DNA of 64,000 bases from Haliotis rubra (taxonomy: Eukaryota), in assembly GCF_003918875.1 (NCBI RefSeq), contig NW_025767630.1, positions 310,001-374,000 of the forward strand, written 5' to 3'. The notes below the pieces were generated by a model that did no database searches, was not told the origin of the DNA, and saw only the letters and a program-made list of their open reading frames with translations. Within the stretch, counting starts at the first letter, position 1. The number at the start of each line of letters is the position of its first letter. Position numbers and translations under genes: made by a program. Of this stretch, positions 38,502 through 61,186 are shown piece after piece.

Positions 38502-38589
38502 GATGGAGCAAGTGCCGTTACAGATGTAGATGCAGCTCAGTCGAAGAAGGGAATGCGGATGATTGACGGTGCGTCCATGACGTTATATA

Positions 38590-39030
38590 CTTCTACGGAC
38601 ATCACGCTGAGTGAACGACTTCGGGAGTGACGGCACTGTCAGCGTCGGTATGATTGGCACCATCGATATTCAATCATTGGCTGATTGAGGCATGAGATAT
38701 ATTTACACCTTGTGCATATTGTTTCAGCTATGAGTGAACGACGCATTTGTTAGTCAGGTTGACACGCACCATCACGTATAATCTCGCGTTGCTTTGATTG
38801 ACACGCTTAACATTCAATCATTGACTGATAGGGGCATGGGATGTAGTTACGCGTCGTGTTGCTGTTACAAGTATGAGTGAACCACTTCGGGCGTGACGCC
38901 CTTGTTAGCCAGCTTGACATGCACCGTCACGCAAATCTCCGGGCGCTCTGATTGACTCCGTCAACAGTCAATCATTGACTGATAGGAACATGAGTTGTAT
39001 TTACGCGTCGTGTATACAGTTACTGTCCAA
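38590..39030. repeat. Three degenerate 123-143-bp tandem repeats directly upstream of LIM-HD copy 1
   Basis: GAGTGAAC recurs at 38609, 38732 and 38875, each followed by TGATTG(A/G)C...TCAATCATTG(A/G)CTGAT...CATG; homologues at ~43505-43760 and ~47927-48180. Confidence 0.8.
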
Positions 39031-39619
39031 TTGATTGACCAATCAATACAGCACCCCGAGCCCTACATCTACTGTTAATTCACCGAAACAACCACACACA
39101 CGTTTTTAAACTCCCACTCTTAATATTGCATACAATGAATAACATCTTTGCTATACATCTAAGACCAATCGGTTAACGATTTAAGAGAAAAAATTACATT
39201 TTGAAATGCATGGTACATATGTACATGCGTTTCCATGAATGATTGCGCATGTTTTCTAACATACCTAAACATCTTCCGACAACATTAAGAGTGAGTGAGT
39301 GAGTTTAGTTTTACGCCGCTTTTAGCAATATTCCAGCGTAAAACGGCGGGAGACACAAGGAATGGTCTTCACACATTGTACCCAGACAACATTAAGACCA
39401 AACCCGGGGTTGATAACATTTATTCAACATTATTCAACAAGTGAAAACTCGACGATTTGAAACAATGAATAACACAATTCACCAGACTTTCTCCGAGTCC
39501 ATTTATAATGGACATTACAGCAACGTATGTACTTCATTGTTTGAAACATCTTCACATTTAATCGGAACCAAAGATTAGCCGGTACATTCTCCTATTTGCC
39601 AAAGGGTCTCACCATGAAG

Positions 39620-39781
39620 GGGCGGTGGGGTAGCCTAGTGGTTAAAGCGTTGGCTCGTCACGCCGAAGACCCGGTTCGAATCCCCACATGGGTACAATGT
39701 GTGAAGACCATTTCTGGTGTCCCCGCATGATGTTGCTGGAATATTGCTAATAGTGGCGTAAAACCAAAACTCAGTCAGACA
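39620..39781 (+). mobile_element. SINE family A copy in the copy 1/copy 2 intergenic region
   Basis: 14-bp TSD GTCTCACCATGAAG at 39606-39619 and 39782-39795; the paralogous site near 44197 is empty. Confidence 0.9.
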
Positions 39782-40527
39782 GTCTCACCATGAAGACGCG
39801 TTACTCTGGATATGCACATGAGTGTTACTAAACAACATAATATCTGAGATTTGTTTCTCACCATCAATATTTCAGAGTGAACCACGGGGTGTTTGACCTG
39901 TGATCACCTCATGGCGCTTTTAAATATCATCATGGAAGTCGTGAACAACAATAAAAATAAGATTAGCTATGAATTTGGAAATATCACCACAGACCGAGAC
40001 ACATAAAGCTCAATAATTCTGTATAGAGATATATGAACGTTAAATATTTAATTACACCGTATTTCAACAATTGTTTTATCCCATTTCATCCAACAATTTG
40101 CTTTTTTTACTGCTTGGATGAGATGTATAACGCGAATTTGTCGCGCGATTAACCCGTGTGTGCATTAATACAATTGTTCTGTATTGACAAAGCGTAGGCC
40201 ACACAAAGAAATCTATTGTTTCCTTCTTATGATAGTTTTATCACAATATAAATGCTTGACTCGTAAGTTTGCAAATGGCAAATATTTTGCATCCATTATA
40301 TGAAATATGAACTGTTGTTAGTTTTTCTTTTGATTTATGAGATTTGTTTTAATAACATAACGTATTTGTGAACTGTGTGTTATGTCAAGCATCATCAACC
40401 TGCATGATGAGCGAGCTCATCGATGACAAGGAAACAGTGCAATGTTCAGTATCAATGATTACTGAGTGGACTCGTCGCGGCTGATCACTCTGATGTCATT
40501 GCTTGTCCAAACACTGATCTCGCGTCA

Positions 40528-40574
40528 TCATGGCACTCCAGTTCACTCTAAGATGCCAAGCCAACATTTAAATA
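40528..40574 (+). promoter_or_regulatory. Conserved proximal promoter of the LIM-HD genes (TCATGRCA-N5-GTTCACTC plus TATA-like box)
   Basis: GTTCACTC at 40541, 44963, 49382, 60413 (+) and 38609, 53741, 59170 (-), each 17-19 bp upstream of a TATA-like box and about 105-120 bp upstream of the ATG. Confidence 0.75.
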
Positions 40575-40661
40575 GACTTGATGTGTGCTGGAGTCATCAT
40601 TCCATCTGTCATCAGATCTCCACAACAAGTCCTCCTCCAGATCCTTCTGAGCTATTCCAAA

Positions 40662-41324
40662 ATGTCGGATATGTCATATGACTATCTATCCTCCGACTTG
40701 GAAGAATCGGCAGACTTCATCGCTCTCAGTTTCAACGTGGCTGACCCCTTGTGTTTCACGTGCTGTGACGTCATCACCGACCAGTACTATCTACGTGCTG
40801 GGGATCACGTGTGGCACGAGCACTGTCTGCGTTGCTGTGTGTGTCAGGTGACGCTCGGTGGACATTCTACTTGCTTCGTCAGAGACGGAAACATATTCTG
40901 TCAGAGAGACTTCGCCCAGGTTTATAAGACCAAATGTAGTTCCTGTTTACGACCCATCGAGTCTGGAGATTGGGTGAGATCGGCTGGTGAGAACATGTAC
41001 CACCTTGCATGTTTTTCGTGCAGCACGTGCCAAAGACAATTGTCCACAGGAGAAGACTTCGCCATACACGACGGACGAGTACTTTGCAGAGTCCACGCCC
41101 TCAACCCCGACGACGAGAACGTTAACTGCAGATCAAAATCCAAGAGATTCCGAACAGTCTTCAACGAGGACCAGGTAGCAGTTTTACAGAAGTACTTCGA
41201 CCTTGACACTAACCCAGCCGGAAGTGACCTCGGGATGATCGCCGAAGAAGCGGGTCTTCCCAGACGAGTGGCCCAAGTGTGGTTCCAAAATGCACGTGCT
41301 AAGCTCAAGAGGGCCATGCATTGA
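40662..41324 (+). CDS. Intronless LIM-homeobox gene, copy 2 (Awh/Lhx6/8-like), 220 aa
   Basis: ATG at 40662 (MSDMSYDY...) matches the start of the paralogs; the track start at 40578 is TTG. LIM-LIM-HD intact; AATAAA at 41578-41583. Confidence 0.95.
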   Translation: MSDMSYDYLSSDLEESADFIALSFNVADPLCFTCCDVITDQYYLRAGDHVWHEHCLRCCVCQVTLGGHSTCFVRDGNIFCQRDFAQVYKTKCSSCLRPIESGDWVRSAGENMYHLACFSCSTCQRQLSTGEDFAIHDGRVLCRVHALNPDDENVNCRSKSKRFRTVFNEDQVAVLQKYFDLDTNPAGSDLGMIAEEAGLPRRVAQVWFQNARAKLKRAMH

Positions 41325-42389
41325 ACATGACAACGTTTTGTATTGACAACTCTGGAACTTATTGTATTGTAGATAATTATGTATTTATAAATTGTCCTTG
41401 TTGTTGATATCGTCAACTAATCACTGCAGCTCGAAGTGCTCTATCTCAGCTAAGGCACTTAATTGTGTATATACTTTATTTATTTTACCACTTGTTATTA
41501 TTTATGCCATCAGTGACTGTTCTGTACCTAGCCAATATTTAACATGTAATTTATTTTATGTCCATACTTTGACCATTAATAAAGGATTCGACGCACATTT
41601 TATTTTGTTGTGTAAACAAGTGTAATGTAAAAGGTGCATAATAATATTTTGTTTACACTAGTGCTTCTCGAAGGGGAAGAGTGCACTTAATTTCCCTTCA
41701 GCAATATCACGGCGAAGGACACCAGAAATGGGCTTCACACATTGTACCCATGTCGGGAATCGAACCCGGGTCTTCGTCCATGACGTTATATGTTTCTACG
41801 TATACGGACATTACATTGAATGAACGACTTCGGGCTTGACAGCACAGCCAGCCACGTCAACGGGGTAGTCCCGTAAGTTCGACCTTTAGGTCGAGGTAAA
41901 ATTCCTTTGATGTTGAATGTTTTGAAAACGGATTAAGACACTGGTTTTCTACAAAATGTGAAATGTGTCCACTAAGGCAGCGAAATATGACATTTGTACC
42001 AGCTGGATGACATGTGAACCAGCGGCTTAAGTGAGTGAGTTTAGTTCTCTCAATTCATTAGTAGTAAGTTATTCAATTTCTTACATAAACTTGCATGCTA
42101 TAAGAATGTTGGAACTGACAGTTTTCATCATCATTTCCACAACTTCAGTTATGGCAAATGCACAATTGGTTATATCCTAGTTCTCGTGGTGGAAGATATA
42201 AATAAATGGTTATATTTATATGCATCGTGGAGATGCATTCAGAAAGACTGCATATCAGTCTCAACAGTGAACGACATAATTTCCCAAATACCTGGAGACC
42301 ACAACCACAGACCTGTACACAACGAAGTCAAGGTGAATCTTTTCGACTGTACCATTTCATCAATTCATGCAATAACAGAAACTTAATAC

Positions 42390-42665
42390 ATTGGTCTATA
42401 TAATTATCTAAATTAAAAGTTGATGGTTATACTCTCGGAACCATGAGATAGTAGCAATTCTTCTAAATCGTTTATAAAAATTGAAAACAGTAGCGGTGAC
42501 AAGTTTTCTCCTTGTCTTACTCCAGAGTGACTGAAGAATTAGTCCGAGTAGGATTTACTAATGTTAACACATGATTTGATATTATTATACATGTTCTGTA
42601 TGAGTAACATGTAGAAATTTTCCATTTATATTACACCTGAACATTTTTTGCCATAGCCCAATTAT
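42390..42665 (-). mobile_element. Decayed LINE RT fragment inside the duplicated unit (second copy ~46817-47092)
   Basis: Minus-strand translation LWQKMFRCNINGKF.../NMYNNIKSCV...GVRQGENLSPLLFSIFINDLE with stops and frameshifts. Confidence 0.75.
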
Positions 42666-45083
42666 CAAAAATACTGACGGTCCCCGCACAAACAACAACC
42701 TCGGGGGTTGGCATTGCCGTCTCACGAAGGTTGTGGGGATAACATCCCAACCTTTTCTCGAGTTGCCCAAGTTCTTGGCAGATGAAAAGTACTGAACGAG
42801 ACAAAGATGCTTCAGTACAATGCTGGCCNNNNNNNNNNNNNNNNNNNNNNNNNNNNNNNNNNNNNNNNNNNNNNNNNNNNNNNNNNNNNNNNNNNNNNNN
42901 NNNNNNNNNNNNNNNNNNNNNNNNNNNNNNNNNNNNNNNNNNNNNNNNNNNNNNNNNNNNNNNNNNGGAACGACTAGATATCTCGAAGTTCAGGTGTGCA
43001 AATAACGACCTGACATTGACGGAGTACCTGGAAAATGTCTCCTATTATTGTGTTAAGTTGTTGAGCTCGTGCTTCTTGGTTCTGGACCGTATATCTGTGT
43101 TGCCTGTATATTTTGCTTTCACCATATATGATTTGTGCTATTTAATTTAATTCATAAGGAAATGGTCATTTGTAGTGCTATTGTATGTTGTGTTATTTAA
43201 AGTTGCGTATTTTGGTGCTATAAACTTTTTTATGTATATATTATGTTATATGAATTTGTATTATATATTATGTAGACAATAGTAATTACCGTCACATTGA
43301 ATGTTTAATTAAAAATGATATTTTACAGCGTGAATCTTGTCCACTTATTTAGCGGTGAACATATTAACATTAACCCTACAGTTGTAAAAACATTGACTGC
43401 CAATTGTCTAGAACCAGTGGACCTTAAAGATACACCCCTGCAACCCGACCAGTTTGTTTTTACACCCATGCAAAGGTCGGACTGACGGGACCTTACCACG
43501 TTAACGCCGTCACATACAATCTCGCGGGGCTTTGATTGACTCAACCAATAGTCAATCATTGGTTGATGGAGGCATGAGATGTATTTACGTGTCGTGCTTA
43601 CGGTTACAGCCACCTAACTGAGTGAACGACTTCGGGCGTGACGCCTTGCTAGCCGGGTTGACACGCACCGTCACGTGCAATCTAACGCTTTGATTGACTC
43701 CTTCACGGTCAATCATTGATTGATAGGGGCATGGGTTGTGTCTACGTGTCGCAAATACAGTTAAGGTCGAACTGCTCGATATGTCAATGCTGTACCCCGA
43801 GCCCATCACCGTTCATTCACTGAAACAGACACGCAGAAGAATTCCATTCTAAATATTGCATACAATTAATAAAATCTTCACTATACAACTAAGACCAATC
43901 GGATAGCGATTTAAGAGAGACTATATTTTGTACTGTATGGTACACATCTATATACGTTTACGAAAGGCATTGCGTATGTGGTCCAACATACTTAAGATGC
44001 TTACAGCAACACAAATGGTCAAATCTGGGGTTGATAATCATAAACCTCGACATTGTAAAAATAAATAACAAATTCATCAGACTTTCCCTCATTCCAATTA
44101 AAATTGAGTTTGCAGCAAAACATTTACTTCATTTTCTAACACATCTTTGTATTTAAACAGAACAAAAGATGAGATGGTGCGTTATATGTGGCCAAGGGTC
44201 TCACCATTATGCAAAACATGTTATAATTACTCTGCAAATACACGTGATTATATGTATATTAGCATAAAATCTGCCGATTTGTTCCTGACCTTCAGCATTA
44301 GATTTCCGCGTGAACCGTGGGATGTTTAACCTATGATCAACTGATGGCCCTTTCAGATATGAGCATGTAAGTTGTCTACAACAATAAACATGTTAAAAAC
44401 ATATTTGGAACATTTTTTCGGACTGAAAATATGAAGACAGACCAGGACATACTAAGCTCAGGAATTCTATATAGCGGTATAGAAACGTTGGATATGTACT
44501 AACATCGTATTCAAATATTTGGTTTATCCCATTCCATCCAACAATTTTATTTACTTGACAGTTTGGATGAGACTTTAATTTGTAGCGCGCTAAACCCGTG
44601 TGTGCAATAATACAATGGTTCTGCACTGACAAAACATACTCCAAACACTAGACATCAATTGTTTCCTTGTAGTATATTTTTATCGTAATATAAGTATACA
44701 TGCTATGTATTTCAGTTGGCAAATGGCAAACATTTTGTATCTATAAAATATTGTATGAAATATGAACAACTGTTTCTTTTGATCCGTGAGATTTGTTTTG
44801 ATAACATAATATATTTGTGAACTGTGTGTTATGTCAAGCATCCAATGACAAGGAAACAATGCATCGATCAGTCTCAATGATTAATGGGTGAGCTCATCGC
44901 GGCAGATAACTCTGATGTCGTTGCTTGTCCAAACACTGATCTCGCGTCATCATGGCACTCCAGTTCACTCTAAGATGCCAAGCCAACATTTAAATAGACT
45001 TGATGTGTGCTGGAGTCGTCATTCCATCTGTCATCAGATCTCCACAACAAGTCCTCCTCCAGATCCTTCTGAGCTATTCCAAA

Positions 45084-45746
45084 ATGTCGGACATGTCATA
45101 TGACTATCTATCCTCCGACTTGGAAGAATCGGCAGACTTCATCGCTCTCAGTTTCAACGTGGCTGACCCCTTGTGTTTCACGTGCTGTGACGTCATCACC
45201 GACCAGTACTATCTACGTGCTGGGGATCACGTGTGGCACGAGCACTGTCTGCGTTGCTGTGTGTGTCAGGTGACGCTTAGTGGACATTCTACTTGCTTCG
45301 TCAGAGACGGAAATATATTCTGTCAGAGAGACTTCGCTCAAGTTTATAAGACCAAATGTAGTTCCTGTTTAAGACCCATCGAGTCTGGAGATTGGGTGAG
45401 ATCGGCCGGTGAGAACATGTACCACCTTGCATGTTTCTCGTGCAGCACGTGCCAAAAACAGTTGTCCACAGGAGAAGACTTCGCCATCCACGACGGCCGA
45501 GTACTTTGCCGAGTCCACGCCCTCAACCTCGATGAAGAGAACGTCAACTGCAGACAAAAATCCAAGAGATTCCGAACAGCCTTCAACGAGGACCAGGTAG
45601 CAGTTTTACAGAAGTACTTCGACCTTGACACCAACCCTACCGGAAGTGACCTCGGGAGGATCGCCGAAGAAGCGGGTCTTCCCAGACGAGTGGCCCAAGT
45701 ATGGTTCCAAAATGCACGTGCTAAGCTCAAGAGGGCCATGCATTGA
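45084..45746 (+). CDS. Intronless LIM-homeobox gene, copy 3, 220 aa
   Basis: Near-identical to copy 2, 4422 bp downstream; intact LIM-LIM-HD; AATAAA at 46005-46010. Confidence 0.93.
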   Translation: MSDMSYDYLSSDLEESADFIALSFNVADPLCFTCCDVITDQYYLRAGDHVWHEHCLRCCVCQVTLSGHSTCFVRDGNIFCQRDFAQVYKTKCSSCLRPIESGDWVRSAGENMYHLACFSCSTCQKQLSTGEDFAIHDGRVLCRVHALNLDEENVNCRQKSKRFRTAFNEDQVAVLQKYFDLDTNPTGSDLGRIAEEAGLPRRVAQVWFQNARAKLKRAMH

Positions 45747-48700
45747 ACATTACAACGTATTGTATTGAACCATCTGGAACTTACTAGTATTGTATTGTAG
45801 ATAATTATGTATTTATATATTGTCCTTCTTGTTGATAATCGCCAACTAACCACTGCAGCTTCAAGTGCTCTATCTCAGCTAAGGCATTTAATTATATATA
45901 TTATATTCCTTTTACCACTTGTTATTATTTATGTCATCAGTGACTATTTTGTACATAGTCAATGTGTAACGTGTAATTTATTTGATGTCCATTCTTTGAC
46001 CATTAATAAAGGATTCGACGCACATTTTATTTTGTTGTGTAAACAAGTGTAATGTAAAAGGTGCATAATAATATTTTGTTTACACTAGTGCTTCTCGCAG
46101 GGGGAAGAGTGCACTTAATTTCCCTTCAGCAATATCACGGCGAAGGACACCAGGGTGGGCTTCACACATTGTACCCATGTCGGGGATCGAACCCGGGTCT
46201 TCGTCCATGACGTTATATGTTTCTACGTATACGGACATTACATTGAATGAACGACTTCGGGCGTGACAGCACAGCCAGCCACGTCAACGGGGTAGTCCCG
46301 TAAGTTCGACCTTAAGGTCGAGGTAAAATTCCTTTGATGTTGAATGTTTTGAAAACGGATTAAGACACTGGTTTTCTACAAAATGTGAAATGTGTCCACT
46401 AAGGCAGCGAAATATGACATTTGTACCAGCTGGATGACATGTGAACCAGCGGCTTAAGTGAGTGAGTTTAGTTCTCTCAATTCATTAGTAGTAAGTTATT
46501 CAATTTCTTACATAAACTTGCATGCTATAAGAATGTTGGAACTGACAGTTTTCATCATCATTTCCACAACTTCAGTTATGGCAAATGCACAATTGGTTAT
46601 ATCCTAGTTCTCGTGGTGGAAGATATAAATAAATGGTTATATTTATATGCATCGTGGAGATGCATTCAGAAAGACTGCATATCAGTCTCAACAGTGAACG
46701 ACATAATTTCCCAAATACCTGGAGACCACAACCACAGACCTGTACACAACGAAGTCAAGGTGAATCTTTTCGACTGTACCATTTCATCAATTCATGCAAT
46801 AACAGAAACTTAATACATTGGTCTATATAATTATCTAAATTAAAAGTTGATGGTTATACTCTCGGAACCATGAGATAGTAGCAATTCTTCTAAATCGTTT
46901 ATAAAAATTGAAAACAGTAGCGGTGACAAGTTTTCTCCTTGTCTTACTCCAGAGTGACTGAAGAATTAGTCCGAGTAGGATTTACTAATGTTAACACATG
47001 ATTTGATATTATTATACATGTTCTGTATGAGTAACATGTAGAAATTTTCCATTTATATTACACCTGAACATTTTTTGCCATAGCCCAATTATCAAAAATA
47101 CTGACGGTCCCCGCACAAACAACAACCTCGGGAGTTGGCATTGCCGTCTCACGAAGGTTGTGGGAAAATAACATCCCAACCTTTTCTCGAGTTGCCCAAG
47201 TTCTTGGCAGATGAAAAAGTACTGAACGAGACAAAGATGCTTCAGTACAATGCTGGCCNNNNNNNNNNNNNNNNNNNNNNNNNNNNNNNNNNNNNNNNNN
47301 NNNNNNNNNNNNNNNNNNNNNNNNNNNNNNNNNNNNNNNNNNNNNNNNNNNNNNNNNNNNNNNNNNNNNNNNNNNNNNNNNNNNNNNNNGGAACGACTAG
47401 ATATCTCGAAGTTCAGGTGTGCAAATAACGACCTGACATTGACGGAGTACCTGGAAAATGTCTCCTATTATTGTGTTAAGTTGTTGAGCTCGTGCTTCTT
47501 GGTTCTGGACCGTATATCTGTGTTGCCTGTATATTTTGCTTTCACCATATATGATTTGTGCTATTTAATTTAATTCATAAGGAAATGGTCATTTGTAGTG
47601 CTACTGTATGTTGTGTTATTTAAAGTTGCTTATTTTAGTGCTATAAACTTGTTATGTATATATTATGTAGTATGAATTTGTATTATATATTATGTAGACA
47701 ATAGTAATTACCGTCACATTGAATGTTTAATTAAAAATGATATTTTACAGCGTGAAACTTGTCCACTTATTTTCCGGTGAACATATTAACATTAACCCTA
47801 CAGTTGTAAAAACATTGACTGCCAATTGTCTAGAACCAGTGGACCTTAAAGATACACCCCTGCAACCCGACCAGTTTGTTTTTACACACATGCAAAAGTC
47901 GGACTAACGGGACTTACCACGTTAACGCCGTCACATACAATCTCGCGGGGCTTTGATTGACTCAACCAATAGTCAATCATTGGTTGATGGAGGCATGAGA
48001 TGTATTTACGTGTCGTGCTTACGGTTACAGCCACCTAACTGAGTGAACGACTTCGGCAGTGACGCCTTGTTAGCCGCGTTGACACGCACCGTCACGTGCA
48101 ATCTAACGCTTTGATTGACTCCTTCACGGTCAATCATTGATTGATAGGGGCATGCGTTGTGTCTACGTGTCGCAAATACAGTTAAGGTCAAACTGCTCGA
48201 TATGTCAATGCTGTACCCCGAGCCCATCACCGTTCATTCACTGAAACAGACACGCAGAAGAATTCCATTCTAAATATTGCATACAATTAATAAAATCTTC
48301 ACTATACAACTAAGACCAATCGGATAGCGATTTAAGAGAGACTATATTTTGTACTGTATGGTACACATCTATATACGTTTACGAAAGGCATTGCGTATGT
48401 GGTCCAACTTACTCAAGATGCTTACAGCAACACAAATGGTCAAATCTGGGGTTGATAATCATAAACTCGACATTGTAAAAATAAATAACACAATTCATCA
48501 GACTTTCCCTCATTCCAATTATAATTGAGGTTGCAGCAAAACATTTACTTCATTTTCTAACACATCTTTGTATTTAAACAGAACAAAAGATGAGATGGGG
48601 CGTTATATGTGGCCAAGGGTCTCACCATTATGCAAAACATGTTACTCTGCAAATACACGTGATTATATGTATATTAACATAAAATCTGCCGATTTGTTTC

Positions 48701-49502
48701 TGACCTTCAGTATTAGATTTCCGCGTGAACCGTGGGATGTTTAACCTATGATCAACTGATGGCGCTTTCAGATATGAGCATGTAAGTCGTCTACAACAAT
48801 AAACATGTTCAAAAAATATGTGGAACATTTTTTCGGACTGAAAATATCAAGACAGACCAGGACATACTAAGCTCAGGAATTCTATATAGCGGTATAGAAA
48901 CGTTGGATATTTACTAACATCGTATTCAAATATTTGGTTTATCCCATTCCATCCAACAATTTTATTTACTTGACTGTTTGGATGAGACTTTAATTTGTAG
49001 CGCGCTAAACCCGTGTGTTCAGTAATACAATGGTTCTGCACTGACAAAACATACTCCAAACACTAGACATCATTTGTTTTTTTGTAGTATATTTTTATCG
49101 TAATATAAGTATACATGCTAGGCTCGTATTTTAGTTGGCAAATGGCAAACATTTCGTATCTATAAAATATTGTATGAAATATGAACAACTGTTTCTTTTG
49201 ATCCGTGAGATTTGTTTTGATAACATAATATATTTGTGAACTGTGTGTTATGTCAAGCATCCAATGACAAGGAAACAATGCATCGATCAGTCTCAATGAT
49301 TAATGGGTGAGCTCATCGCGGCAGATAACTCTGATGTCGTTGCTTGTCCAAACACTGATCTCGCGTCATCATGGCACTCCAGTTCACTCTAAGATGCCAA
49401 GCCAACATTTAAATAGACTTGATGTGTGCTGGAGTCGTCATTCCATCTGTCATCAGATCTCCACAACAAGTCCTCCTCCAGATCCTTCTGAGCTATTCCA
49501 AA

Positions 49503-50165
49503 ATGTCGGACATGTCATATGACTATCTATCCTCCGACTTGGAAGAATCGGCAGACTTCATCGCTCTCAGTTTCAACGTGGCTGACCCCTTGTGTTTCAC
49601 GTGCTGTGACGTCATCACTGACCAGTACTATCTACGTGCTGGGGATCACGTGTGGCACGAGCACTGTCTGCGTTGCTGTGTGTGTCAGGTGACGCTCGGT
49701 GGACATTCTACTTGCTTCGTCAGGGACGGAAACATATTCTGTCAGAGAGACTTCGCCCAGGTTTATAAGACCAAATGTAGTTCCTGTTTAAGACCCATCG
49801 AGTCTGGAGATTGGGTGAGATCGGCCGGTGAGAACATGTACCACCTTGCCTGTTTTTCGTGCAGCACGTGCCAAAGACAGTTGTCCACAGGAGAAGACTT
49901 CGCCATCCACGACGGACGAGTACTTTGCAGAGTCCACGTCCTCAACCCCGACGACGAGAACGTTAACTGCAGACAAAAATCCAAGAGATTCCGAACAACC
50001 TTCAACGAGGACCAGGTAGCAGTTTTACAGAAGTACTTCGACCTTGACACCAACCCTACAGGAAGTGACCTCGGAAGGATCGCCGAAGAAGCGGGTCTTC
50101 CCAGAAGAGTGGCCCAAGTGTGGTTCCAAAATGCACGTGCTAAGCTCAAGAGAGCCATGCATTGA
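49503..50165 (+). CDS. Intronless LIM-homeobox gene, copy 4, 220 aa
   Basis: Near-identical to copies 2 and 3, 4419 bp downstream of copy 3; intact domains. Confidence 0.93.
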   Translation: MSDMSYDYLSSDLEESADFIALSFNVADPLCFTCCDVITDQYYLRAGDHVWHEHCLRCCVCQVTLGGHSTCFVRDGNIFCQRDFAQVYKTKCSSCLRPIESGDWVRSAGENMYHLACFSCSTCQRQLSTGEDFAIHDGRVLCRVHVLNPDDENVNCRQKSKRFRTTFNEDQVAVLQKYFDLDTNPTGSDLGRIAEEAGLPRRVAQVWFQNARAKLKRAMH

Positions 50166-52971
50166 ACATGACAACGTTTTGTATTGAACCATCTGGAACT
50201 TATTGTATTGTAGATAATTATATTTTTATAAATTGCTTTTGTTGTTGATATCGTCAACAAACCACTGCAGCTCGAAGTGCTTTATCTCAGCTAAGGCATT
50301 TAATTGTGTATATGTATACTTTATTTATTGTACCACTTGTTATTATTTATGCCATCAGTGACTATTTTGTACATAGCCAATATTTAACGTGTAATTTATT
50401 TTATGTCCATACTTTGACGCACAGTTATTTCAAATATTTGTTTTTGGTAGTAGTTAACGTTGAAATAACAGTTCATTGAGTGCCCCAACTGAAATGTAAG
50501 ACCCAAATATAACGAGAGGAATCTACTCTATCTCTTAAGGCGGTGCTAGGAGATATAACGGGAGTGAAGGAAAACTTGCTTTCTGTATTTTATGGAATAA
50601 ATGATTTTTGTGACAAAATTCCCAAGAGGATGCTGAATTTTATGTAGTAATAATATGAATAACATGGCCACTGAACTCCCCGCCACATGGATATGCCCTA
50701 AGCACACACAACTAAAATGTTAAACAACTAAATTGTCGACAATTAAGAAACAAATGGGTCTTCAGGCAGAAGAAAGGACGAGCCACTAAAGGCCGTATAA
50801 ACGCGTTTTGTACATATCAGGGACCCTTGTCACAAAGACATTTTGAAGGCACGATATCACACCACACTTCTCTAAAAATAAATAATGCATTTCTCTCAAT
50901 AATATTAACTATCAGCCCTCAGGGAAGTTACCATATAATTTATTAAGTGAGTGAGTTCAGTTTTACGCCATTTCAGCTATATGGCGGCGGTCTGTAAATA
51001 ATCGAGTCTGGACCAGACAATCCAGTGATCAACAGCATGAGCATCGATCTGCGAAACTGGGAACCGATGACATGTGTCAACCAAGTTAGCGAGCCTGACC
51101 ACCTGATCCCGTTAGTCACCTCTTACGACAAGCATGGGTTACTGAAGATCAATATTCTAACCCTGTATAATAAATAAATACATACATGCATGCATACGTG
51201 TTGAATGATANNNNNNNNNNNNNNNNNNNNNNNNNNNNNNNNNNNNNNNNNNNNNNNNNNNNNNNNNNNNNNNNNNNNNNNNNNNNNNNNNNNNNNNNNN
51301 NNNNNNNNNNNNNNNNNNNNNNNNNNNNNNNNNNNNNNNNNNNNNNNNNNNNNNNNNNNNNNNNNNNNNNNNNNNNNNNNNNNNNNNNNNNNNNNNNNNN
51401 NNNNNNNNNNNNNNNNNNNNNNNNNNNNNNNNNNNTGTGGTCATCTTAATACTTGGATCGCTTTGTGGATCTGATCCCAGACATACAGCCGATGCACGAT
51501 AAAACAAAATTCTAATTGCTTTACATTTCGTTCAAATAACAACAGAACAAAAAAAAATATTAAATGCTACAATACTATCAAGCATGTAGATGCATTTCAT
51601 TTACAAATGGTAGTCAGCTTAAATTCTGTGCTTTTCACACATTGTTTGCTGATGTACAAATATAAAATGCTTAAGCTATTATAATACATGTAATGAGAGT
51701 AAAAAGAATACCTTCCAAGCTCTTGTTTGATCTATGAACTGACTAGTAAATGTATGTACGTTTTATATGAGCATGTGTGACATAATGTATTTGAACATCT
51801 GGAAAATAAAAGGTAACCCCACCCCCACCCCCCACACACACACCCCAAAAAATAAAAAATACAAAAATTACAAAAATCCCGAAACAACAGAACTTCCAGC
51901 GACTTTTAGGACTTAGTTACATGGGGAGTTACACATGATTCCGGATAACAAGGGTATCAACACGAAGATGAAGCGAACGCTCAAGAAATCGTCTTCTGCC
52001 CCATTTTCATGTGTCCCCACCTTTTTGCATCATTGTAAACGTCACTGATGTAAATATTAAATGGTGTTAGGACCCCGTGGTCAAATATGGCCTTTTCTTT
52101 CACAGCAGTTCATGCAGAAATTTGGGAAATTTGATTTTAACCTGATATTATTATTATCATTTTTTTATTTATACTTTTCTATTATTTCTTTTCCTCGTGT
52201 AGTTTAAAATAATATTTTCTTTACTGAGAAAGTGTAACTCCGAACATAGCAGGTTACATGAGACCACTTTCTGAAAAACACTGTATTGATTGATTCCATC
52301 CAGTTTCTGTCCCTGCAGTGGTGTTATGTGACTCGATGTTTCAGGACTTTTATTGTAAATTATAGCAGCTGTATTATGGTGAAGATGTACAAAGATGTTT
52401 CTGTCCAGCTATGAATGAATACCTGTGGAAAAAAAAAGATTTTAACCTGATCAGATTCGATTGATAAAGTTGAATTTGACAATGTTGAATTTGATAATGT
52501 TGAATTTGATAATGTTGAATTGTGTCTTGTAACCCTTCACATAAAAGTGGACGACTGCGATGCATGCATGGGGAGGAGACATCTACTGCTTGAGTACACT
52601 GCGTGCATATACATATCATATGATTGCCCTCGTGGTCAAGTGGATATTGTGTTTGTTCGTAGAGCAGAAAGGTAGCGGTTCGAACTCTGGTCTCGTCAGA
52701 ACAAAAGCTATTGAAAGATAATCTTATACAACATGATAAAATGTGCATTGAATAATTTATTAACAGTTTAATATATACACACGAAATATACCACAATCAA
52801 ACATTGGCTATGTACAATGTAGTCACTGATGGCATGAATAATAAGGGGGCACAATAAATAATAACATTCATCCCTATTCATGAAGAGCACTTCAGACTGT
52901 ACCGGTTGTTTTATATCAGCAGTAAGTCATGTCACATAATTATTACTGCCTGAATGTGTGAAATATCACAT

Positions 52972-53634
52972 TCACTGCATGGCTCTCTTGAGCTTAGCTC
53001 GGGCATTCTGGAACCACACTTGGGCCACTCTTCTGGGAAGACCCGCTTCTTCGGCGATCCTCCCGAGGTCACTTCCTGTAGGGTTGGTGTCAAGGTCGAA
53101 GTACTTCTGTAAAACAGCTACCTGGTCCTCGTTGAAGGCTGTTCGGAATCGCTTGGACTTTGGTCTGCAGTTGACGTTCTCGTCGTCGGGGTTGAGGACG
53201 TGAACGCGGCAAAGGACTCGACCGTCGTGGATGGCGAAGTCTTCTCCTGTGGACAACTGTCTCTTGCACATGCTGCACGAGAAACATGCAAGGTGGTACA
53301 TGTTCTCACCGGCCGATCTCACCCAATCTCCGGACTCGATGGGTCTTAAACAGGAACTACACCTTGTCTTATAAACGTAGGCGAAGTCTCTCTGACAGAA
53401 TATGTTTCCGTCTCTGACGAAGCAAGTAGAATGTCCACCGAGCGTCACCTGACACACACAGCAACGCAGACAGTGTTCGTGCCACACGTGATCCCCAGCA
53501 CGTAGATAGTACTGGTCAGTGATGACGTCACAGCACGTGAAACACAAGGGGTCAGCCACGTTGAAACTGAGAGCGATGAAGTCTGCCGATTCTTCCAAGT
53601 CGGAGGAGAGGAGTTCATATGACATATCCGACAT
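52972..53634 (-). CDS. Intronless LIM-homeobox gene, copy 5, 220 aa
   Basis: Intact LIM-LIM-HD ORF; TATAAAT on minus strand at 53717-53723. Confidence 0.95.
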   Translation of the reverse strand: MSDMSYELLSSDLEESADFIALSFNVADPLCFTCCDVITDQYYLRAGDHVWHEHCLRCCVCQVTLGGHSTCFVRDGNIFCQRDFAYVYKTRCSSCLRPIESGDWVRSAGENMYHLACFSCSMCKRQLSTGEDFAIHDGRVLCRVHVLNPDDENVNCRPKSKRFRTAFNEDQVAVLQKYFDLDTNPTGSDLGRIAEEAGLPRRVAQVWFQNARAKLKRAMQ

Positions 53635-55439
53635 TTTTAGGGTGCAAAGGAGGTCTTACTGATGCCTTGATGAAGACGATGGAGAATGGAATGACGACAG
53701 CGGCGAACAAGAAGTGATTTATATGTTGGTTTGACAACTTGAGTGAACAAGCGTGTCATGATGATAAGTGTTTTAACACGTCATGGCGACCTATCGATTA
53801 GCTGATTGGCGATCTGATCGATGCATTGTGATTGGCAACGTGATTGCATCTCACAACTGAGCAGATGATGTTAAACCTTAATTGGTAATGATTAATGATT
53901 TAAATTTAATGCTATTTATGTCCCGTGTCAGCCTGTTACTTTGTGCCGTTTTTGTAATTAATTAGTTTAAGGATCCCCCAACAGTGAAAGTAAAGAAAAT
54001 AGAAATAATATAAAAAAAACTGAGAGTTTCTTTTTATTGTCGCCTACTCTGCAAAACCCATTAATTCAGAGTAATGATCAGAGTAGTCTCCAGCAGCATT
54101 ATTGTAATTTCACATGACGAGGCCAAGACTGACTGAATAATATAATGAGAAAGTGTAATCCCAAATATAACATGTGTTACGTACATGATCTTGTTCACCT
54201 TATAACAAACACAAAGGATTTGTTTATATCTGTCGACCATTGTTGAGAAGTTAAGGTGAAAAATGTGGCGTTTGTATAATGCATATTCATACACTTTGAT
54301 CATATTTACAAGTGTACCTTTTGATGCGTATCATAAGTTGAATGACCAAAACCTGTCGATGTTGTTGACAAAGCGAGGAATGTCTGATACTATTTTTTTA
54401 TTTTCCATTTTGAAAAGATAACCAAATATACCACCGCTCCTCTCCACAACTTCTCATGACAAAGTCATTTTTTTACCGTTAAAGATGTTACTGTGGAAAC
54501 GTGGATTGTGTGTGACCACAAGAAGGAACTACATTATTTATTGAGAAGCAAAGACGAAAATTATCTGTCTTTAAATTATTTGGAATTCCAAAATTATCAT
54601 TATGAATAGTTTAATTATCCAGCTGTTTTTATTATTGAATTTAAAACATCAATTAGCCCGCTTATTTTCTTTTCAGTTCTATCATGTTGAGGAAAGTTCA
54701 GGTTGAATATGAAATGATGAATTGAAAGGGAACTCCCCAAAAATAGAATATTTGCAACAACCTGCAAACAATAGATATTTTCAAAGATTTATGGAATGTG
54801 GGCATAAGATTTTTTACGTGGCCTTGTGTAAACATAAATCTACTGTTGGAATGTCCGTGTTACGTTATGCCAGAAATATTCTGTTGCCGCACTATCAAAA
54901 TATGACAATATTGTTAGAATCACAAACATATGGCTTTTTCAGGTTCTCAACAATGTAGTCACGTTTATCTAAACAAACAAAGACATAAAAACACCATGAA
55001 TTCTCTATGATTTCTTGTTGGAGATTTATCAGAGCTCTTCCGGTGAAGTCTGTGTCACGCCCGAGACAAACATCATCGAGGCGTAAAAGTAACGTTTAGC
55101 GTGACTTAACTAGTTGTCAAGTATACTAGTATTTCCGGACGGAGGGGTCAATCTTCGTGGGGTCAGCGGCTTGATTGCCTGGGCAGTAACGTTCACTTAG
55201 TTGTAAAAACATATTGACTGATTGACCGGTGTGAAATAATTAAGAAAACAAGTTCATAACGGCACTGCTCATCACAGATTAATCACTGCACTGACCAGCA
55301 CTGACCACGGACCGGTCACAGTGTGACACGATACTCGTCATGTGTCAGCACATCCAAGCTGACAAAGTCCCGAGTATAAAGGTAACAGAATCAGGTCTAC
55401 AGGCACTTCTCCCCTCACCTTCTCCTGGAAATCTACGCA

Positions 55440-56105
55440 ATGTCGGACACATCATATGACCTCATGTCCTCCGACTTGGAAGAATCAGCAGACGTCATCG
55501 CTCTCAGTTTCAACATGGCTGACCCCTTGTGTTTCACTTGCTGTGACGTCATCACCGACCAGTTCTATCTACGTGCGGGGGATCACGTGTATCACGAACA
55601 CTGTCTGCGTTGCTGTGTGTGTCAGGTGACGCTTGGTGGACATTCTACTTGCTTCGTCAGAGACGGGGACATATTCTGTCAGAGAGACTTCGCCTACGTT
55701 TATAAGACAAGGTGTAGTTCCTGTTTAAGACCCATCGAGTCTGGAGATTGGGTGAGATCGGCCGGTGAGAACATGTACCACCTTGCATGTTTCTCGTGCA
55801 GCATGTGCAAGAGACAATTGTCCACAGGAGAAGACTTCGCCATCCACGACGGTCGGGTACTTTGCCGAGTCCACGCCCTCAACCCCGACGAAGAGAACGT
55901 TAACTGCAGACACAATTCCAAGCGATGCCGAACAGCCTTCAACAAGGACCAGGTAGCAGTTTTACAGAGGTACTTCGACCTTGACACCAAACCTACCGGA
56001 AGTGATCTCGGGAGGATTGCCGAAGAAGCGGGCCTTCCAAGACGAGTGGCCCAAGTGTGGTTCCAAAATTCACGTGCTAAACTCAAGAAGAGAGCCATGC
56101 AGTGA
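55440..56105 (+). CDS. Intronless LIM-homeobox gene, copy 6, 221 aa
   Basis: Intact ORF with private changes (HVYH, KRCRT, DTKP, WFQNSRAK); TATAAA at 55375-55380. Confidence 0.93.
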   Translation: MSDTSYDLMSSDLEESADVIALSFNMADPLCFTCCDVITDQFYLRAGDHVYHEHCLRCCVCQVTLGGHSTCFVRDGDIFCQRDFAYVYKTRCSSCLRPIESGDWVRSAGENMYHLACFSCSMCKRQLSTGEDFAIHDGRVLCRVHALNPDEENVNCRHNSKRCRTAFNKDQVAVLQRYFDLDTKPTGSDLGRIAEEAGLPRRVAQVWFQNSRAKLKKRAMQ

Positions 56106-58398
56106 ACTTTTGATCTTGCGTGTCAGGTAGTGCTCTATTTATGTGCTGTGTTAGTCACGGGTATCTGAAGACACCCGCATCTATTTATCCGGCCTCCATC
56201 GATTCATGGGTCAAGTGCTATGAAACTTATTACCCTGTGCAGCAAATCCCGGTAAAATGAACCACAAAGGAACGTTTTACATGATTAGACAGGCCGAGGT
56301 TTTCGGGGGTGGCTAGAATTGCCTGTTTCTTTTAAATTCCCACTGTTCTTTATAAGATACAATTGTCATGCTTTGCCCTTTAAATCATTTTTTTCTGCAT
56401 ATGTTTATGTGACCAACATGTCATTGCATCGCACCTGTGATCAATAATTGCTTCATGTTATTAAAATGTCTATTATTGCCTCTGAAGTAATAGCATGGCA
56501 TTTGACATTCTTCTACATGTGAATAATAAACAAAGAATGCATACATTTGTTTCTTGTATAGTTGTGTACAATCTCTCAGATTCCCTTGAGATAAGAAGGC
56601 TGGGATCGAAGCGATCGTTTCAACCACATACATGTCTATATACAGAATATATACAAACATCTTTACATACATACTATATGCACTATGTGAGATTAGAGCT
56701 GTTGCTTGCAGGGAATCCTGGTATTCTGATATGTTTAGTTTAGCAGTCTGATTAGGGCTGTGAATGGAATGGAATATTTGCTTTTATTGGCAGCTCATGT
56801 GACCATGACGTAAGATTCAGATATATGTAAGGTGTGTAACAGCCAATTCTTTTTCACGTATTTACACACTGAACTAACGAAACCATGTGATCTGATTTTT
56901 CTGTGAATATAAAGATTCAGCATTACAAACAAACCAAATAACAAATACAAACTTCCCCCAAACAACTAAAACAAATATCCATTAGTTTGCATGACACGAG
57001 GGATGTCGTAAACTTTATGTCTGAACACCCGGTATCAAGACTTTCATAGTGGTTTATAAACACATGCTCTGTCATCGTATCACATGGTGACAATCACTGG
57101 ATTGTCTGCTCCGGACTCGATTTGTTTACAAACATCATCGTACAGCTGTGATACTGCTGAAACAAATATATACTCATGATATAGTCACAATTGTACAACC
57201 GGCTCTGCTTTCAGAAGAGATTTCTTGTGGATGTGGACATGGTTTTGTCGCTTCAGTTTGCAGGTACAACACTCTCATTCAACTCAAATATTGTTTGCTC
57301 AGAACTTTAGGTCTCAAAAGAAGTTATACCGTAGACACGTAGAAGACATTTCCAAAATTTGACTCATCGGTCTCTCCAGTGCAATTCTCATTAGTTTCAG
57401 GTGGCAAATGACTTGCCTTTGTATGTGTTTGTGAATGGTTCCCCGGAGGAGCCGGATATCACATGGTTATCGCTGTTTGACAGGGATTTCTAAACACACA
57501 TGTTGTGATACAGTTGACATTTACAAAGACAACGTGTTAAGGCAGAAAATATTTTTTGCATTTTCAAAGAACTGATAACATCTTTAAATGAGAGTTATAG
57601 ATCCGTATGGTGAACAAATGAGATGCTTTCTTTGGATAAACAACTTCTTTCCCACAGTAAGCTATCACTTATCTCAGTGTTAATATCTACACTGCAGTCA
57701 CTGTAAAATATATCACGATATCCATGTAGTTATTTCCCCCTTTCTCCAAACAACGTATTTATGCTGCCATTCATCACCACTCGCCCCTTTCCGTAACCTT
57801 CAGGAAGACTCGTCCACTATCAATGAATAGTATGTGAGGAAATACGACATGCCAGTCAGAATACTTACGTTACTTCCGGTCCATCGATCAAAAAATCTTT
57901 CAGGATTGTCTATCAATTTCAAATACATCTTGTATCTCAAAATATATCAAAGATACAATTAATTGTGTCCAACTTAAGTTTTAACTGTGTCAACATAAAG
58001 CCTACTTAATTCGATGTGCTTTAAAAAACATCATATATTATATAAACATGTAAAATATAAGTGAATTAGAAGGCCCCAGTTGACAACTGTTTCGTACGTA
58101 CGCGCTTAGATGGAACCAGTATGATCACAAGACGTGACGAGTCTCTTTTCTGCTTGTTAAGTTAATTCGTTGGGTTTCTTTGAAACCACACTTTGGACAC
58201 TCTTCACATCTCCTTTGTGATCACCCCAAGGTCAGGCAGACAGACTTACAGACATTGATTCATTTCATCTTTCATTTATTTCTATATGCGTTGATTAAAT
58301 AGATGTGGTTGATTTCTACAATACATACATATACCAGGATTCACCACAGTACATAAACAGTTTACATAAAGCACTAGCTGACACGCGAACTCGAATGT

Positions 58399-59076
58399 TC
58401 AGTGCATGGCTCTCTTGAGCTTAGCTCGGGCATTCTGGAACCATACTTGGGCCACTCTTCTGGGAAGACCCGCTTCTTCGGCGATCATCCCGAGGTCACT
58501 TCCTGTAGGGTTGGTGTCAAGGTCGAAGCACTTCTGTAAAACAGCTACCTGGTCCTCGTTGAAGGCTGTTCGGAATCTCTTGGACTTTGGTCTGCAGTTG
58601 AAGTTCTCGTCGTCGGGGTTGAGGACGTGAACGCGGCAAAGTACTCGACCGTCGTGGATGGCGAAGTCTTCTCCTGTGGACAACTGTCTTTGGCACGTGC
58701 TGCATGAGAAACATGCAAGGTGGTACATGTTCTCACCGGCCGATCTCACCCAATCTCCAGACTCGATCGGCCTTAAACAGGAACTACATTTGGTCTTATA
58801 AACCTGGGCGAAGTCTCTCTGACAGAATATGTTTCCGTTCCTGACGAAGCAAGTAGAATGTCCACCGAGCGTCACCTGACACACACAGCAACGCAGACAG
58901 TGCTCGTGCCACACGTGATCCCCAGCACGTAGATAGAACTGGTCAGTGATGACGTCACAGCACGTGAAACACAAGGGGTCAGCCATGTTGAAACTGAGAG
59001 CGATGAAGTCTGCTGACTCCTCCAAGTCAGAGGAAAGATAGTCATATGATATGTCCGACATTTTGGAGGAACCCAT
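58399..59076 (-). CDS. Intronless LIM-homeobox gene, copy 7 (225 aa from first ATG; paralog-equivalent ATG at 59061 gives 220 aa)
   Basis: Intact LIM-LIM-HD ORF; TATAAA on minus strand at 59145-59150. Confidence 0.94.
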   Translation of the reverse strand: MGSSKMSDISYDYLSSDLEESADFIALSFNMADPLCFTCCDVITDQFYLRAGDHVWHEHCLRCCVCQVTLGGHSTCFVRNGNIFCQRDFAQVYKTKCSSCLRPIESGDWVRSAGENMYHLACFSCSTCQRQLSTGEDFAIHDGRVLCRVHVLNPDDENFNCRPKSKRFRTAFNEDQVAVLQKCFDLDTNPTGSDLGMIAEEAGLPRRVAQVWFQNARAKLKRAMH

Positions 59077-59399
59077 GGTGAACTATAGCAATACACCTAT
59101 GTTTTCAGGAGGAGAAACGTACAACTCGGAGCACACTTACACCATTTATAGGTTGAAGTTGGCACATTAGAGTGAACGACAGTGTCATGACACTGACTGT
59201 TGTGACACGCACAGTGGTCACCGATCGTCGTAATCAGTTGATGTCCAATCAAGGATTAATCACCCAGTCGTGTGACCATATCTCATAGTAACATTAAAAA
59301 AACACCCAATCATTAGGCCCCCTCGCACGGGTCATCTCAGTACGATAACAGCTTTATTATACGCTGATTGCTATGAATACACAAGGCGTTCAATAAAAA

Positions 59400-59725
59400 C
59401 ATGATGTGTTTGATGCAAAAATATATCCTAGTCTTTTATATAGCGCAGAAATGTGGAGAATAAATACATTTGGAAAATTAGAAAAGGTAAATCTGTATGC
59501 TTGTAAAAGGTTTTTGGGTGTTAAACAAAACACTCCAAATATCATGATCTGTGGAGAATGCGACAGGTTTCCTTTATATATACATGTATATGCTCATATT
59601 TGAAAGTAATCCGGTATTGCATAAAGGTATTACACACGCCAACATATCGCTTACCAAAGAAATGCTATAATATGATGCTTTTATTTGATGGAAATGTGGA
59701 TAAAAACTGGGTTACTGATGTAACA
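59400..59725 (+). mobile_element. Fragment of a related RTE-X-like LINE ORF2 (post-RT region)
   Basis: FDAKIYPSLLYSAEMW...CKRFLGVKQNTPNIMICGECDRFP...RLPKKCYNMM parallels 2080-2400. Confidence 0.75.
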
Positions 59726-60523
59726 AATGTTATATTTGGGATTGCACTTTCTTAGTAAATTACAGATTCTAGTACGTTTCTTAGGTTGAGCCCCATCCGG
59801 GATTCGAACCCACACCCTCAATTATAGCATAAAAACACACAAAAGATGACCCTTTTTTCCAAGTATGAAACTATGGATATATAGAAAATGATTTTTGGGT
59901 CGGGTGTCGGGCTGAATACAAATGATGGGTTTCTGCACTATATTGCAGATGCTCTTATATCACTGTAGTTAATTTGTAATACAGTGAACGATCAACGTTT
60001 CTCATATGCAACAATCGGGTCTTCTTTTAAGTAAAATGTACATCTAAGTGTATCAGATTCACATATTGTGCGTCTAAATGTATGATGTTGTATTTTATAT
60101 ATTAAATCGAACTTTATCGTTGCTGATCCGAATATATGATACGACTAATCAGGTCAAAATATCTATATTCAGATACATGTAATACTTTCACAGAAAAAAT
60201 ATTCCTAAAAATAAAAATGTCATATTTTTCTGATGCGGCTGACTGAAGCTTCGCCGTCTTGAAATTTAAACTGGTTAATTAGGTGATCAAGTGATCAGTT
60301 AATCATTACAGAAAACACCTGATTACTAATCAATCAGCAATTGCTGCTGTGACACGCGCTGGTGACGTCACAGCGTGTCATAACGGTCTTCACTCCTCGT
60401 CATGGCATATGCGTTCACTCGGAACTGCCACCGATGCATATATTAACTGCTGTGCACAACATTTTCAGCATCACTTATCACGTTATCTTCATCTTGCTCT
60501 ATTTCCCCCGGTGCTTCTTCACA

Positions 60524-61186
60524 ATGTCGGACATGTCATATGATCTCCTCTCCTCCGACTTGGAAGAGTCAGTAGACTTCATCGCTCTCAGTTTCAACAT
60601 GGCTAACCCCTTGTGTTTCTCTTGCTGTGACGTCATCACTGACCAGTACTATCTACGTGCTGGGGATCGCGTGTGGCACGAGCACTGTCTGCGTTGCTGT
60701 GTGTGTCAGGTGACGCTTGATGGACATTCTACTTGCTTCGTCAGAGACGGGAACATATTCTGCCAGAGAGACTTCGCCTACGTTTACCAGACAAAGTGTA
60801 GTTCCTGTTTACGACCCATCGAGTCTGGAGATTGGGTGAGATCGGCCGGTGAGAACATGTACCACCTTGCATGTTTCTCGTGCAGCATGTGCAAGAGACA
60901 GTTGTCCACAGGAGAAGACTTTGCCATCCACGACGGTCGAGTACTTTGCCGCGTTCACGTCCTCAACCCCGACGACGAGAGCTTCAACTGCAGACCAAAG
61001 TCCAAGCGATTCCGAACAGCCTTCAACGAGGACCAGGTAGCTGTTTTACAGAGGTACTTCGACCATCACACTAATCCTACCGGAAGTGACCTCGGAAGGA
61101 TCGCCGAAGAAGCGGGTCTTCCCAGAAGAGTGGCCCAAGTATGGTTCCAGAATGCCCGAGCTAAGCTCAAGAGAGCCATGCAATGA
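60524..61186 (+). CDS. Intronless LIM-homeobox gene, copy 8, 220 aa
   Basis: ATG at 60524 (MSDMSYDLL...); the track start at 60362 is GTG and lies upstream of the TATA-like box at 60439. Domains intact. Confidence 0.94.
   Translation: MSDMSYDLLSSDLEESVDFIALSFNMANPLCFSCCDVITDQYYLRAGDRVWHEHCLRCCVCQVTLDGHSTCFVRDGNIFCQRDFAYVYQTKCSSCLRPIESGDWVRSAGENMYHLACFSCSMCKRQLSTGEDFAIHDGRVLCRVHVLNPDDESFNCRPKSKRFRTAFNEDQVAVLQRYFDHHTNPTGSDLGRIAEEAGLPRRVAQVWFQNARAKLKRAMQ

Follow-up and report, generated by a model that had tools for sequence, protein, structure and literature searches.

The window analysed here, a 64,000-nucleotide stretch of the Haliotis rubra genome (contig NW_025767630.1, positions 310,001 to 374,000, forward strand), carries an array of LIM-homeobox genes. 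The element under study is the bipartite motif TCATGRCA-N5-GTTCACTC, which lies ahead of the TATA box of six of them and whose downstream half is called the octamer below. Eight intact, intron-free open reading frames (ORFs) of 220 to 223 amino acids span 37830-61186 of the window. Each encodes two LIM domains and a homeodomain (Pfam). The best matches of the array proteins are Haliotis 'LIM/homeobox protein Awh-like', and the nearest named proteins are Awh-like and Lhx8, indicating that the array genes are Awh/Lhx6-8-like LIM-homeobox genes. Their promoters were assigned to lineages by sequence and position, which are given here with the coding sequences (CDS).

38501..37830, minus strand, copy 1 (c1) CDS, lineage F
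40662..41324, plus strand, copy 2 (c2) CDS, lineage A
45084..45746, plus strand, copy 3 (c3) CDS, lineage A
49503..50165, plus strand, copy 4 (c4) CDS, lineage A
53634..52972, minus strand, copy 5 (c5) CDS, lineage B
55440..56105, plus strand, copy 6 (c6) CDS, lineage E
59061..58399, minus strand, copy 7 (c7) CDS, lineage C
60524..61186, plus strand, copy 8 (c8) CDS, lineage D

The exact pattern TCATGRCANNNNNGTTCACTC matched the window six times, at 40528, 44950 and 49369 on the plus strand, at 53741 and 59170 on the minus strand and at 60400 on the plus strand, against 0.00 matches expected from 100 dinucleotide shuffles. Relaxing TCATGRCA-N5-GTTCACTC to three mismatches yielded no extra matches in the window. 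The motif precedes copies 2, 3, 4, 5, 7 and 8, each time on the strand of the gene. The gap from the end of the octamer to the start of the TATA box was 18 bp in copies 2-4, 17 bp in copy 5, 19 bp in copy 7 and 18 bp in copy 8. A first-pass annotation of this DNA had reported the motif at a fixed spacing, 17-19 bp before the TATA box, and its coordinates and strings were all correct. Copy 1 carries the octamer without the TCATGRCA half, 19 bp before TATATAA, with GTCACTCCCGAAGTC in the place of the missing half. Copy 6 shows TCATG alone (55338), 37 bp upstream of TATAAAG (55375). TATA-like heptamers were found by pattern in seven of the eight window promoters, and copy 6 has TATAAAG. The promoters and related modules are as follows.

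38583..38616, minus strand, copy 1 (lineage F) promoter: octamer GTTCACTC 38609-38616, 19-bp gap, TATATAA 38583-38589, ATG 38501; conserved in four species
38732..38882, minus strand, two distal F-type modules upstream of copy 1: each GCGTGTCAAC ... CCCGAAGT(C/G)-GTTCACTCA, octamers at 38732-38739 and 38875-38882
40501..40602, plus strand, copy 2 (lineage A) promoter: GCTTGTC 40501-07, TCATGGCA 40528-35, GTTCACTC 40541-48, TGCCAA 40554-59, TTTAAATA 40567-74, initiator-like TCATTC 40597-602
43620..43627, minus strand, octamer of an F-type distal module within the repeat unit of lineage A, ~1.3 kb ahead of copy 3; twin at 48041-48048
44923..45024, plus strand, copy 3 (lineage A) promoter: motif 44950-44970, TATA 44989-96; near-identical recent duplicate of copy 2
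49342..49443, plus strand, copy 4 (lineage A) promoter: motif 49369-49389, TATA 49408-15
53689..53783, minus strand, copy 5 (lineage B) promoter: TGACGT resembling a cyclic AMP response element (CRE) 53778-83, TCATGACA 53754-61, GTTCACTC 53741-48, TGTCAA 53731-36, TATAAAT 53717-23, initiator-like TCATTC 53689-94
55338..55381, plus strand, copy 6 (lineage E) derived promoter: TCATGTGTCA ... GCTGACA ... TATAAAG (55375-81), no octamer
59144..59210, minus strand, copy 7 (lineage C) promoter: GCGTGTC 59204-10, TCATGACA 59183-90, GTTCACTC 59170-77, TGCCAA 59159-64, TATAAAT 59144-50
60363..60446, plus strand, copy 8 (lineage D) promoter: palindromic CRE TGACGTCA 60363-70, GCGTGTC 60373-79, TCATGGCA 60400-07, GTTCACTC 60413-20, TGCCAC 60426-31, TATATTAA 60439-46

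The strings given for copies 2-4 as motif carriers were correct, but these copies are not independent. They lie in 4.42-kb units with pairwise identities of 97.6-97.9% and count as a single observation because the triplication is recent.

Protein matches led to orthologous arrays of seven genes each in H. asinina (L001 and L005), H. rufescens (L004 and L008) and H. cracherodii (L002 and L007), the last with one truncated gene in addition. A relative with 70% protein identity lies on a 1-kb metagenome contig (L003, identical to L006). The order F-A-(A)-B-E-C-D is identical in the window species and H. asinina, and the portions seen in H. cracherodii and H. rufescens agree with it. Lineage G, which has no copy in the window, is an extra tandem pair in H. 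cracherodii and H. rufescens. In lineage E, CACATCCAAGCTGACA occupies the place of the octamer region in all three species whose promoter was read (including H. asinina and H. cracherodii). Because the same octamer-less state is found in three species, the octamer loss of copy 6 appears to be an old regulatory escape and not a recent lesion. The truncated H. cracherodii gene belongs to lineage C (L007 ~7450-8320, minus strand) and is cut off after ~30 codons, followed by unrelated sequence; its promoter lacks the TGCCAA box and has an intact octamer, a single anecdote. Short relics holding only a homeodomain (…VAQVWFQNARAKLKR…) are present in L007 and L008.

Compared across these arrays, the motif is part of a longer series of blocks. 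From 5' to 3', the blocks start at 0 (TCATGRCA), 13 (GTTCACTC), 26 (TG(C/T)CA(A/C); 25 in two lineage-B promoters) and 38-40 bp (TATA). The TGYCAA box lies 4-5 bp past the octamer, and a GCGTGTCA-like box lies 20-27 bp ahead of the motif. Just ahead of the latter, a CRE-like TGACGT(CA) was found in lineages B and D and also in lineage A of the other species. The upstream flanks had been described as otherwise hard to align. They are not entirely so: the TGYCAA box, the GCGTGTCA-like box and the CRE-like TGACGT sites are also common to them. In 26 promoters, the start of the octamer lies 12-13 bp from TGYCA and a fixed 25-28 bp from the start of TATA, and the octamer-TATA gap of the canonical Awh gene, described below, is 17 bp. 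Among 8-mers common to at least four of the six old promoter lineages, four were seen against 0.02 expected, and GAGTGAAC, the octamer inverted, ranked first (five of six). Only lineages A and B have a TCATTC downstream of the TATA box, at 29-30 bp from start to start. The consensus of the initiator (Inr) is TCAKTY, which TCATTC fits. The predicted start of copy 2 is the A at 40599, with a leader of 63 nt.

Outside lineage E, the copy-6 lineage, the octamer is an invariant short word across diverged paralogue promoters, being exact in 25 of 26. ATTCACTC, in H. rufescens lineage F, is the lone exception. Variable columns were counted within lineages across species, with the rest of 300 bp as background. 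The octamer had 1 variable column of 40 (Fisher P = 9e-9 against background) and the upstream half 4 of 40 (P = 8e-6), while TATA had 6 of 35 and the background 544 of 1269 (43%). A tree of the flanks alone (motif block masked, 25 promoters) had a length of 5.19 substitutions per site; at the flank rates ~42 octamer changes would be expected and 1 was seen (Poisson P ~4e-17), both the tree length and the Poisson figure being rough, as the flanks are saturated. The flanks do not align uniformly, and the motif is far more conserved than its surroundings, both between old paralogue lineages and between the four species, as would be expected of a functional site for protein binding. The refuting condition that the first-pass annotation had set on this point is thus not borne out. 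The R position and the N5 spacer track lineage, not species, in three of four lineages; therefore, local micro-conversion does not explain the identity of the octamer. These results indicate that the motif is a selectively maintained proximal promoter element, and that it is a functional site is well supported by sequence evolution.

The promoters and the ORFs have different histories. In a tree of the 220 bp ahead of each ATG, promoters clustered by lineage across species, with 95-100% support for lineages B-G and lineage A split in two, and the inter-lineage branches measured 0.12-0.8 substitutions per site. The CDS tree clustered by species instead. The approximately unbiased test rejected lineage clades in the CDS for B (P = 4e-84), C (2e-57), D (4e-8) and E (7e-6); the tested groups came from promoters and synteny, though a first CDS tree had already been seen beforehand. 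Promoters clustering by lineage and CDS by species indicates that the promoter lineages predate the species.

Paralogues within a species had a flank identity of ~0.25, which is random, on both sides of an ORF identity of 0.90-0.96, whereas orthologues between species had flank identities of 0.66-0.86 and ORF identities of 0.86-0.91. The identity of paralogues falls to random ~30-60 bp outside the ATG and the stop, and beyond the ORF they resemble each other only in a small island (~0.5) that spans the motif and TATA. Synonymous divergence (dS) was 0.27 between lineages within species and 0.45-0.6 between H. asinina and the other species. The ORFs thus undergo concerted evolution, with gene conversion stopping at the ORF ends, and each array position keeps its own ancient promoter and 3' flank, orthologous across four species. 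The ratio of nonsynonymous to synonymous divergence (dN/dS) was 0.07-0.26, and 29 ORFs from the four species and one metagenome contig were intact. This shows purifying selection on the array proteins and bears out the earlier suggestion that the genes are functional.

Unlike the array genes, canonical Awh contains introns, and it is located on another scaffold. In H. asinina, H. cracherodii and H. rufescens, the promoter of this gene has GAGTGAAC 17 bp before TATAAAG, with ACATGTCAC-TTCGGG after the inverted octamer (canonical Awh loci of the gastropod set: L009 5826-5857, L010 and L013 equivalent, and L011 2875-2902). On the opposite strand this stretch reads CCCGAAGT..GTTCACTCAGTTA and agrees with the array's F-type module over at least 18 positions, with one 6-bp indel. 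The Awh gene of Gigantopelta aegis, a distantly related gastropod, has GTGAACA-N3-GTCAC 14 bp before TATATAAA. The Haliotis and G. aegis Awh promoters have ~8 short blocks in common, namely ACGTAATT, two CCAAT boxes, CGAATCAGCGGG, GTGAACA, GTCAC, TATAAA and ATTGCA, a deep conservation of the Awh proximal promoter within gastropods. The oyster Awh promoter has a 7/8 match to the octamer 24 bp before TATA, which was too weak and was not counted.

The canonical gastropod Awh promoters and those of the array have in common the octamer or its GTGAAC core by the TATA box, the CCCGAAGT/ACTTCGGG block adjacent to it, an AATCAGC block, a CRE-like site and TATA itself. They differ in that the ~30-bp octamer module of the array is inverted relative to the gene, and the two CCAAT boxes and the 12-mer CGAATCAGCGGG of canonical Awh are only loosely kept in the array. 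The octamer element thus predates the array, which inherited it, inverted, from the Awh promoter. Descent of the array promoters from the parent promoter argues against a plain promoter-less retrocopy origin of the intron-free genes.

Taken together, the motif is quite probably the core of a composite RNA polymerase II proximal promoter, with the octamer, which comes from the Awh promoter, as a putative activator docking site. This reading builds on the demonstrated sequence, geometry, constraint and parent-promoter homology and predicts that a protein binds the site, that it activates transcription from the start given above and that the copies are co-regulated. The composite core promoter would consist of the TATA box plus, in lineages A and B, the Inr. 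With a predicted start ~31 bp after TATA, the octamer would sit at about -58 to -51, with a CRE-like site and a GCGTGTCA box 20-45 bp beyond it on the upstream side. Since the octamer is invariant, a single sequence-specific activator most likely docks there, and its fixed distance to TATA suggests that the putative factor directly contacts the basal machinery; the TGRCA and TGYCA arms are probably auxiliary sites. Because the octamer descends from the canonical Awh promoter, one putative factor probably drives both the parent Awh gene and seven of the eight array copies, while the copy-6 lineage would have left octamer control long ago.

Several observations weigh against this composite promoter, besides the saturation of the flanks. 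Lineages C and D are without an exact Inr. The 13-bp step between blocks is no helical repeat; therefore, stacking on the same face is not implied. The upstream half is less universal than the octamer: in lineage F and the metagenome relative TCATGRCA is missing while the octamer-TATA pair is kept, and in lineage D of H. cracherodii and H. rufescens it has decayed to CCAAAGCA. Searches of public runs found no RNA run containing the array genes, so that start sites are predicted only. Of four possibly-RNA runs on 37700-41700, three cover only the repeats resembling short interspersed nuclear elements (SINEs) that separate copies 1 and 2, where the summed depth is very high. Over 38370-38503, the first ~130 bp of the copy 1 CDS, the contig depth was ~7 in two of three possibly-RNA runs, too little to interpret. 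In the literature, the octamer was not found as a described site, nor was an abalone LIM-homeobox array or a mollusc motif of zygotic genome activation.

In a bolder and rather unlikely version of the promoter reading, GTTCACTC would be the response element through which a germ-line or early-embryo factor has governed Awh from a time before Haliotis (Vetigastropoda) and Gigantopelta parted. Abalones would have amplified a minimal Awh protein under this element as a maternal/zygotic dosage array, its ORFs kept uniform by conversion and each copy keeping its own enhancer context. The sole lead to this version is that, during ovary maturation in H. laevigata, a transcript best matching 'Awh-like [H. 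rubra] XP_046546407.1' rises from 0 to 10-41 units (preprint 10.1101/2025.08.18.670794, supplementary file 6); this transcript may stem from an array gene or from canonical Awh. If true, oocyte LHX8 or DUX-type arrays would have their mollusc counterpart in this array.

It is doubtful that the element is a multimer site for TALE-class homeodomain proteins (MEIS, TGIF, PBX or spiralian SPILE), composed of the TGRCA/TGYCA arms and the octamer, whose reverse complement GTGAAC is near TGA(A)CA. The TALE core is TGACA/TGTCA, which the arms resemble, but half of the arms are TGGCA or TGCCA, the G/C variants being as frequent as the A/T ones, and TGGCA/TGCCA are not known to be favoured by TALE proteins. 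The canonical Awh element GTGAACAC(A/T)TGTCAC forms an imperfect palindrome near TGACAGCTGTCA, and TGATTGACA-like PBX-MEIS strings occur upstream of copy 1. Against these likenesses, the base ahead of TGTCA is G or A, not C, and the invariant part is the octamer, which itself contains no TALE core, and not the arms.

The first-pass annotation had named a paired-domain (Pax) site as a candidate, which is very improbable. TTCACTC agrees with the PAI half-site TTCACGC at 6 of 7 positions, and a TG(C/T) follows 5 nt later, roughly in the place of the RED half. The mismatch is an invariant T where the ACGC core has G. Patterns of the P6CON and Pax2/5/8 types, which are rough consensus strings, miss all TATA-proximal sites at up to three mismatches, and their totals in the window were those of chance (30 against 32 and 38 against 36). 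In addition, the halves stand in the opposite order to those of a Pax site, which has no half-site in the position of TCATG, 5' of the octamer, and the TATA-adjacent element of the parent gene is inverted.

Equally improbable is a transcribed element of the 5' untranslated region, with a start site located further upstream, either a short upstream ORF (uORF; ATG RCA NNN NNG TTC ACT C..) or an RNA or DNA hairpin of the TGRCA/TGYCA arms. The motif does open with ATG in lineages A-D, and in lineages A and D it reads as an ORF of 13-14 codons whose end falls within the TATA box, but ORF lengths and ends vary between lineages. The uORF was rejected because the octamer shows no third-position, codon-type wobble across ~5 substitutions per site of flank divergence and because lineage F, the parent gene and the metagenome relative keep the octamer without the ATG. 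The arms form an inverted repeat, as a hairpin would need, but their R and Y do not covary, lineages C and G as well as lineage A of H. cracherodii and H. rufescens having A/C mismatches, and the hairpin was rejected for this reason. For both forms, the TATA-to-Inr geometry fits a start downstream of the motif.

That the octamer is identical without selection, through recent common origin, micro-conversion or a mutational cold spot, is scarcely likely. Copies 2-4 are recent duplicates and the coding regions do undergo conversion; the inter-lineage flanks, however, stand at random identity, the promoter lineages are common to species separated by a dS of 0.45-0.6, the R and N5 variants track lineage, and the same octamer occurs in the unlinked parent gene on another scaffold. 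A basal element of the kind ~55 bp upstream of small nuclear RNA (snRNA) genes, the proximal sequence element (PSE), can hardly be credited: a bipartite site of ~21 bp centred near -55 and 17-19 bp from TATA recalls the PSE-TATA pairing of U6 genes, but the downstream genes are protein-coding LIM-homeobox ORFs under purifying selection, Rfam found no snRNA in the window, and the inversion in the parent gene is not PSE behaviour.

The words CAATCA and TGATTG are frequent upstream of the array genes. Many of them read as CCAAT boxes, the enrichment of which is weak (0.71 against 0.41 per 200 bp), and autoregulation through LHX8-type TGATTG sites (PMC4282238) was left as an unproven side idea.

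A family-specific upstream element is of a well-known kind; the new details are which sequence it has, which gene family it serves and that promoters and ORFs differ in their histories. The octamer ATGCAAAT of immunoglobulin V and histone H2B genes is a family-specific proximal element at a fixed distance to TATA. Like it, the abalone octamer is a short invariant word in a tandem gene family, tens of bp before TATA and within diverged surroundings. Opposite orientations in related gene sets also recur, in VH and V-kappa genes for the immunoglobulins and in the array and canonical Awh here. The abalone element differs in its sequence, GTTCACTC, in having extra flanking blocks at 13-bp steps and in belonging to an abalone-specific LIM-homeobox family. 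The spiralian SPILE TALE genes and the mammalian DUX, Obox and Rhox arrays resemble the abalone array as lineage-specific, small, mostly intron-poor homeobox genes with coding sequences alike within species. In the abalone array, by contrast, conversion is confined to the ORF, each position keeps an ancient promoter, and the genes are of the LIM class, not PRD or TALE.

The octamer offers a precise, testable cis-element in a mollusc gene family, with eight invariant bases at a fixed distance to TATA. The array can also be seen as a natural experiment, in which ORF-limited conversion keeps the protein uniform while six or seven ancient, distinct promoters share only the octamer, and in which one lineage lost it and the loss was kept in the three species read.

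Three assembly gaps (42829-42966, 47259-47389 and 51211-51435) fall between genes within the repeat unit of copies 2-4, no motif, promoter or ORF being nearer than 1 kb. The first and second gaps occupy the equivalent position of consecutive units, which are collinear to either side of them. The copy number of the copy-2-type unit is apparent only, since continuity across the three gaps cannot be verified. Copy 7 has an in-frame upstream ATG at 59076 (59062-59076, MGSSK-MSD…), where H. asinina reads ATC, and the conserved MSD start seems the likelier one.

Outside the genes, a very abundant SINE-like repeat is present between copies 1 and 2 as two inverted copies (39290-39340 and 39617-39725) with loose ends resembling transfer RNA (tRNA), and Rfam returned two tRNA-like matches in the window and nothing else. 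A 36-bp tandem repeat (19.6 copies, 91% matches) occupies 36000-36725, ~1.1 kb past the 3' end of copy 1, and generates long spurious ORFs on both strands. Far from the array, the reverse-transcriptase-like ORFs at 1449-2976 are probably a retroelement fragment.

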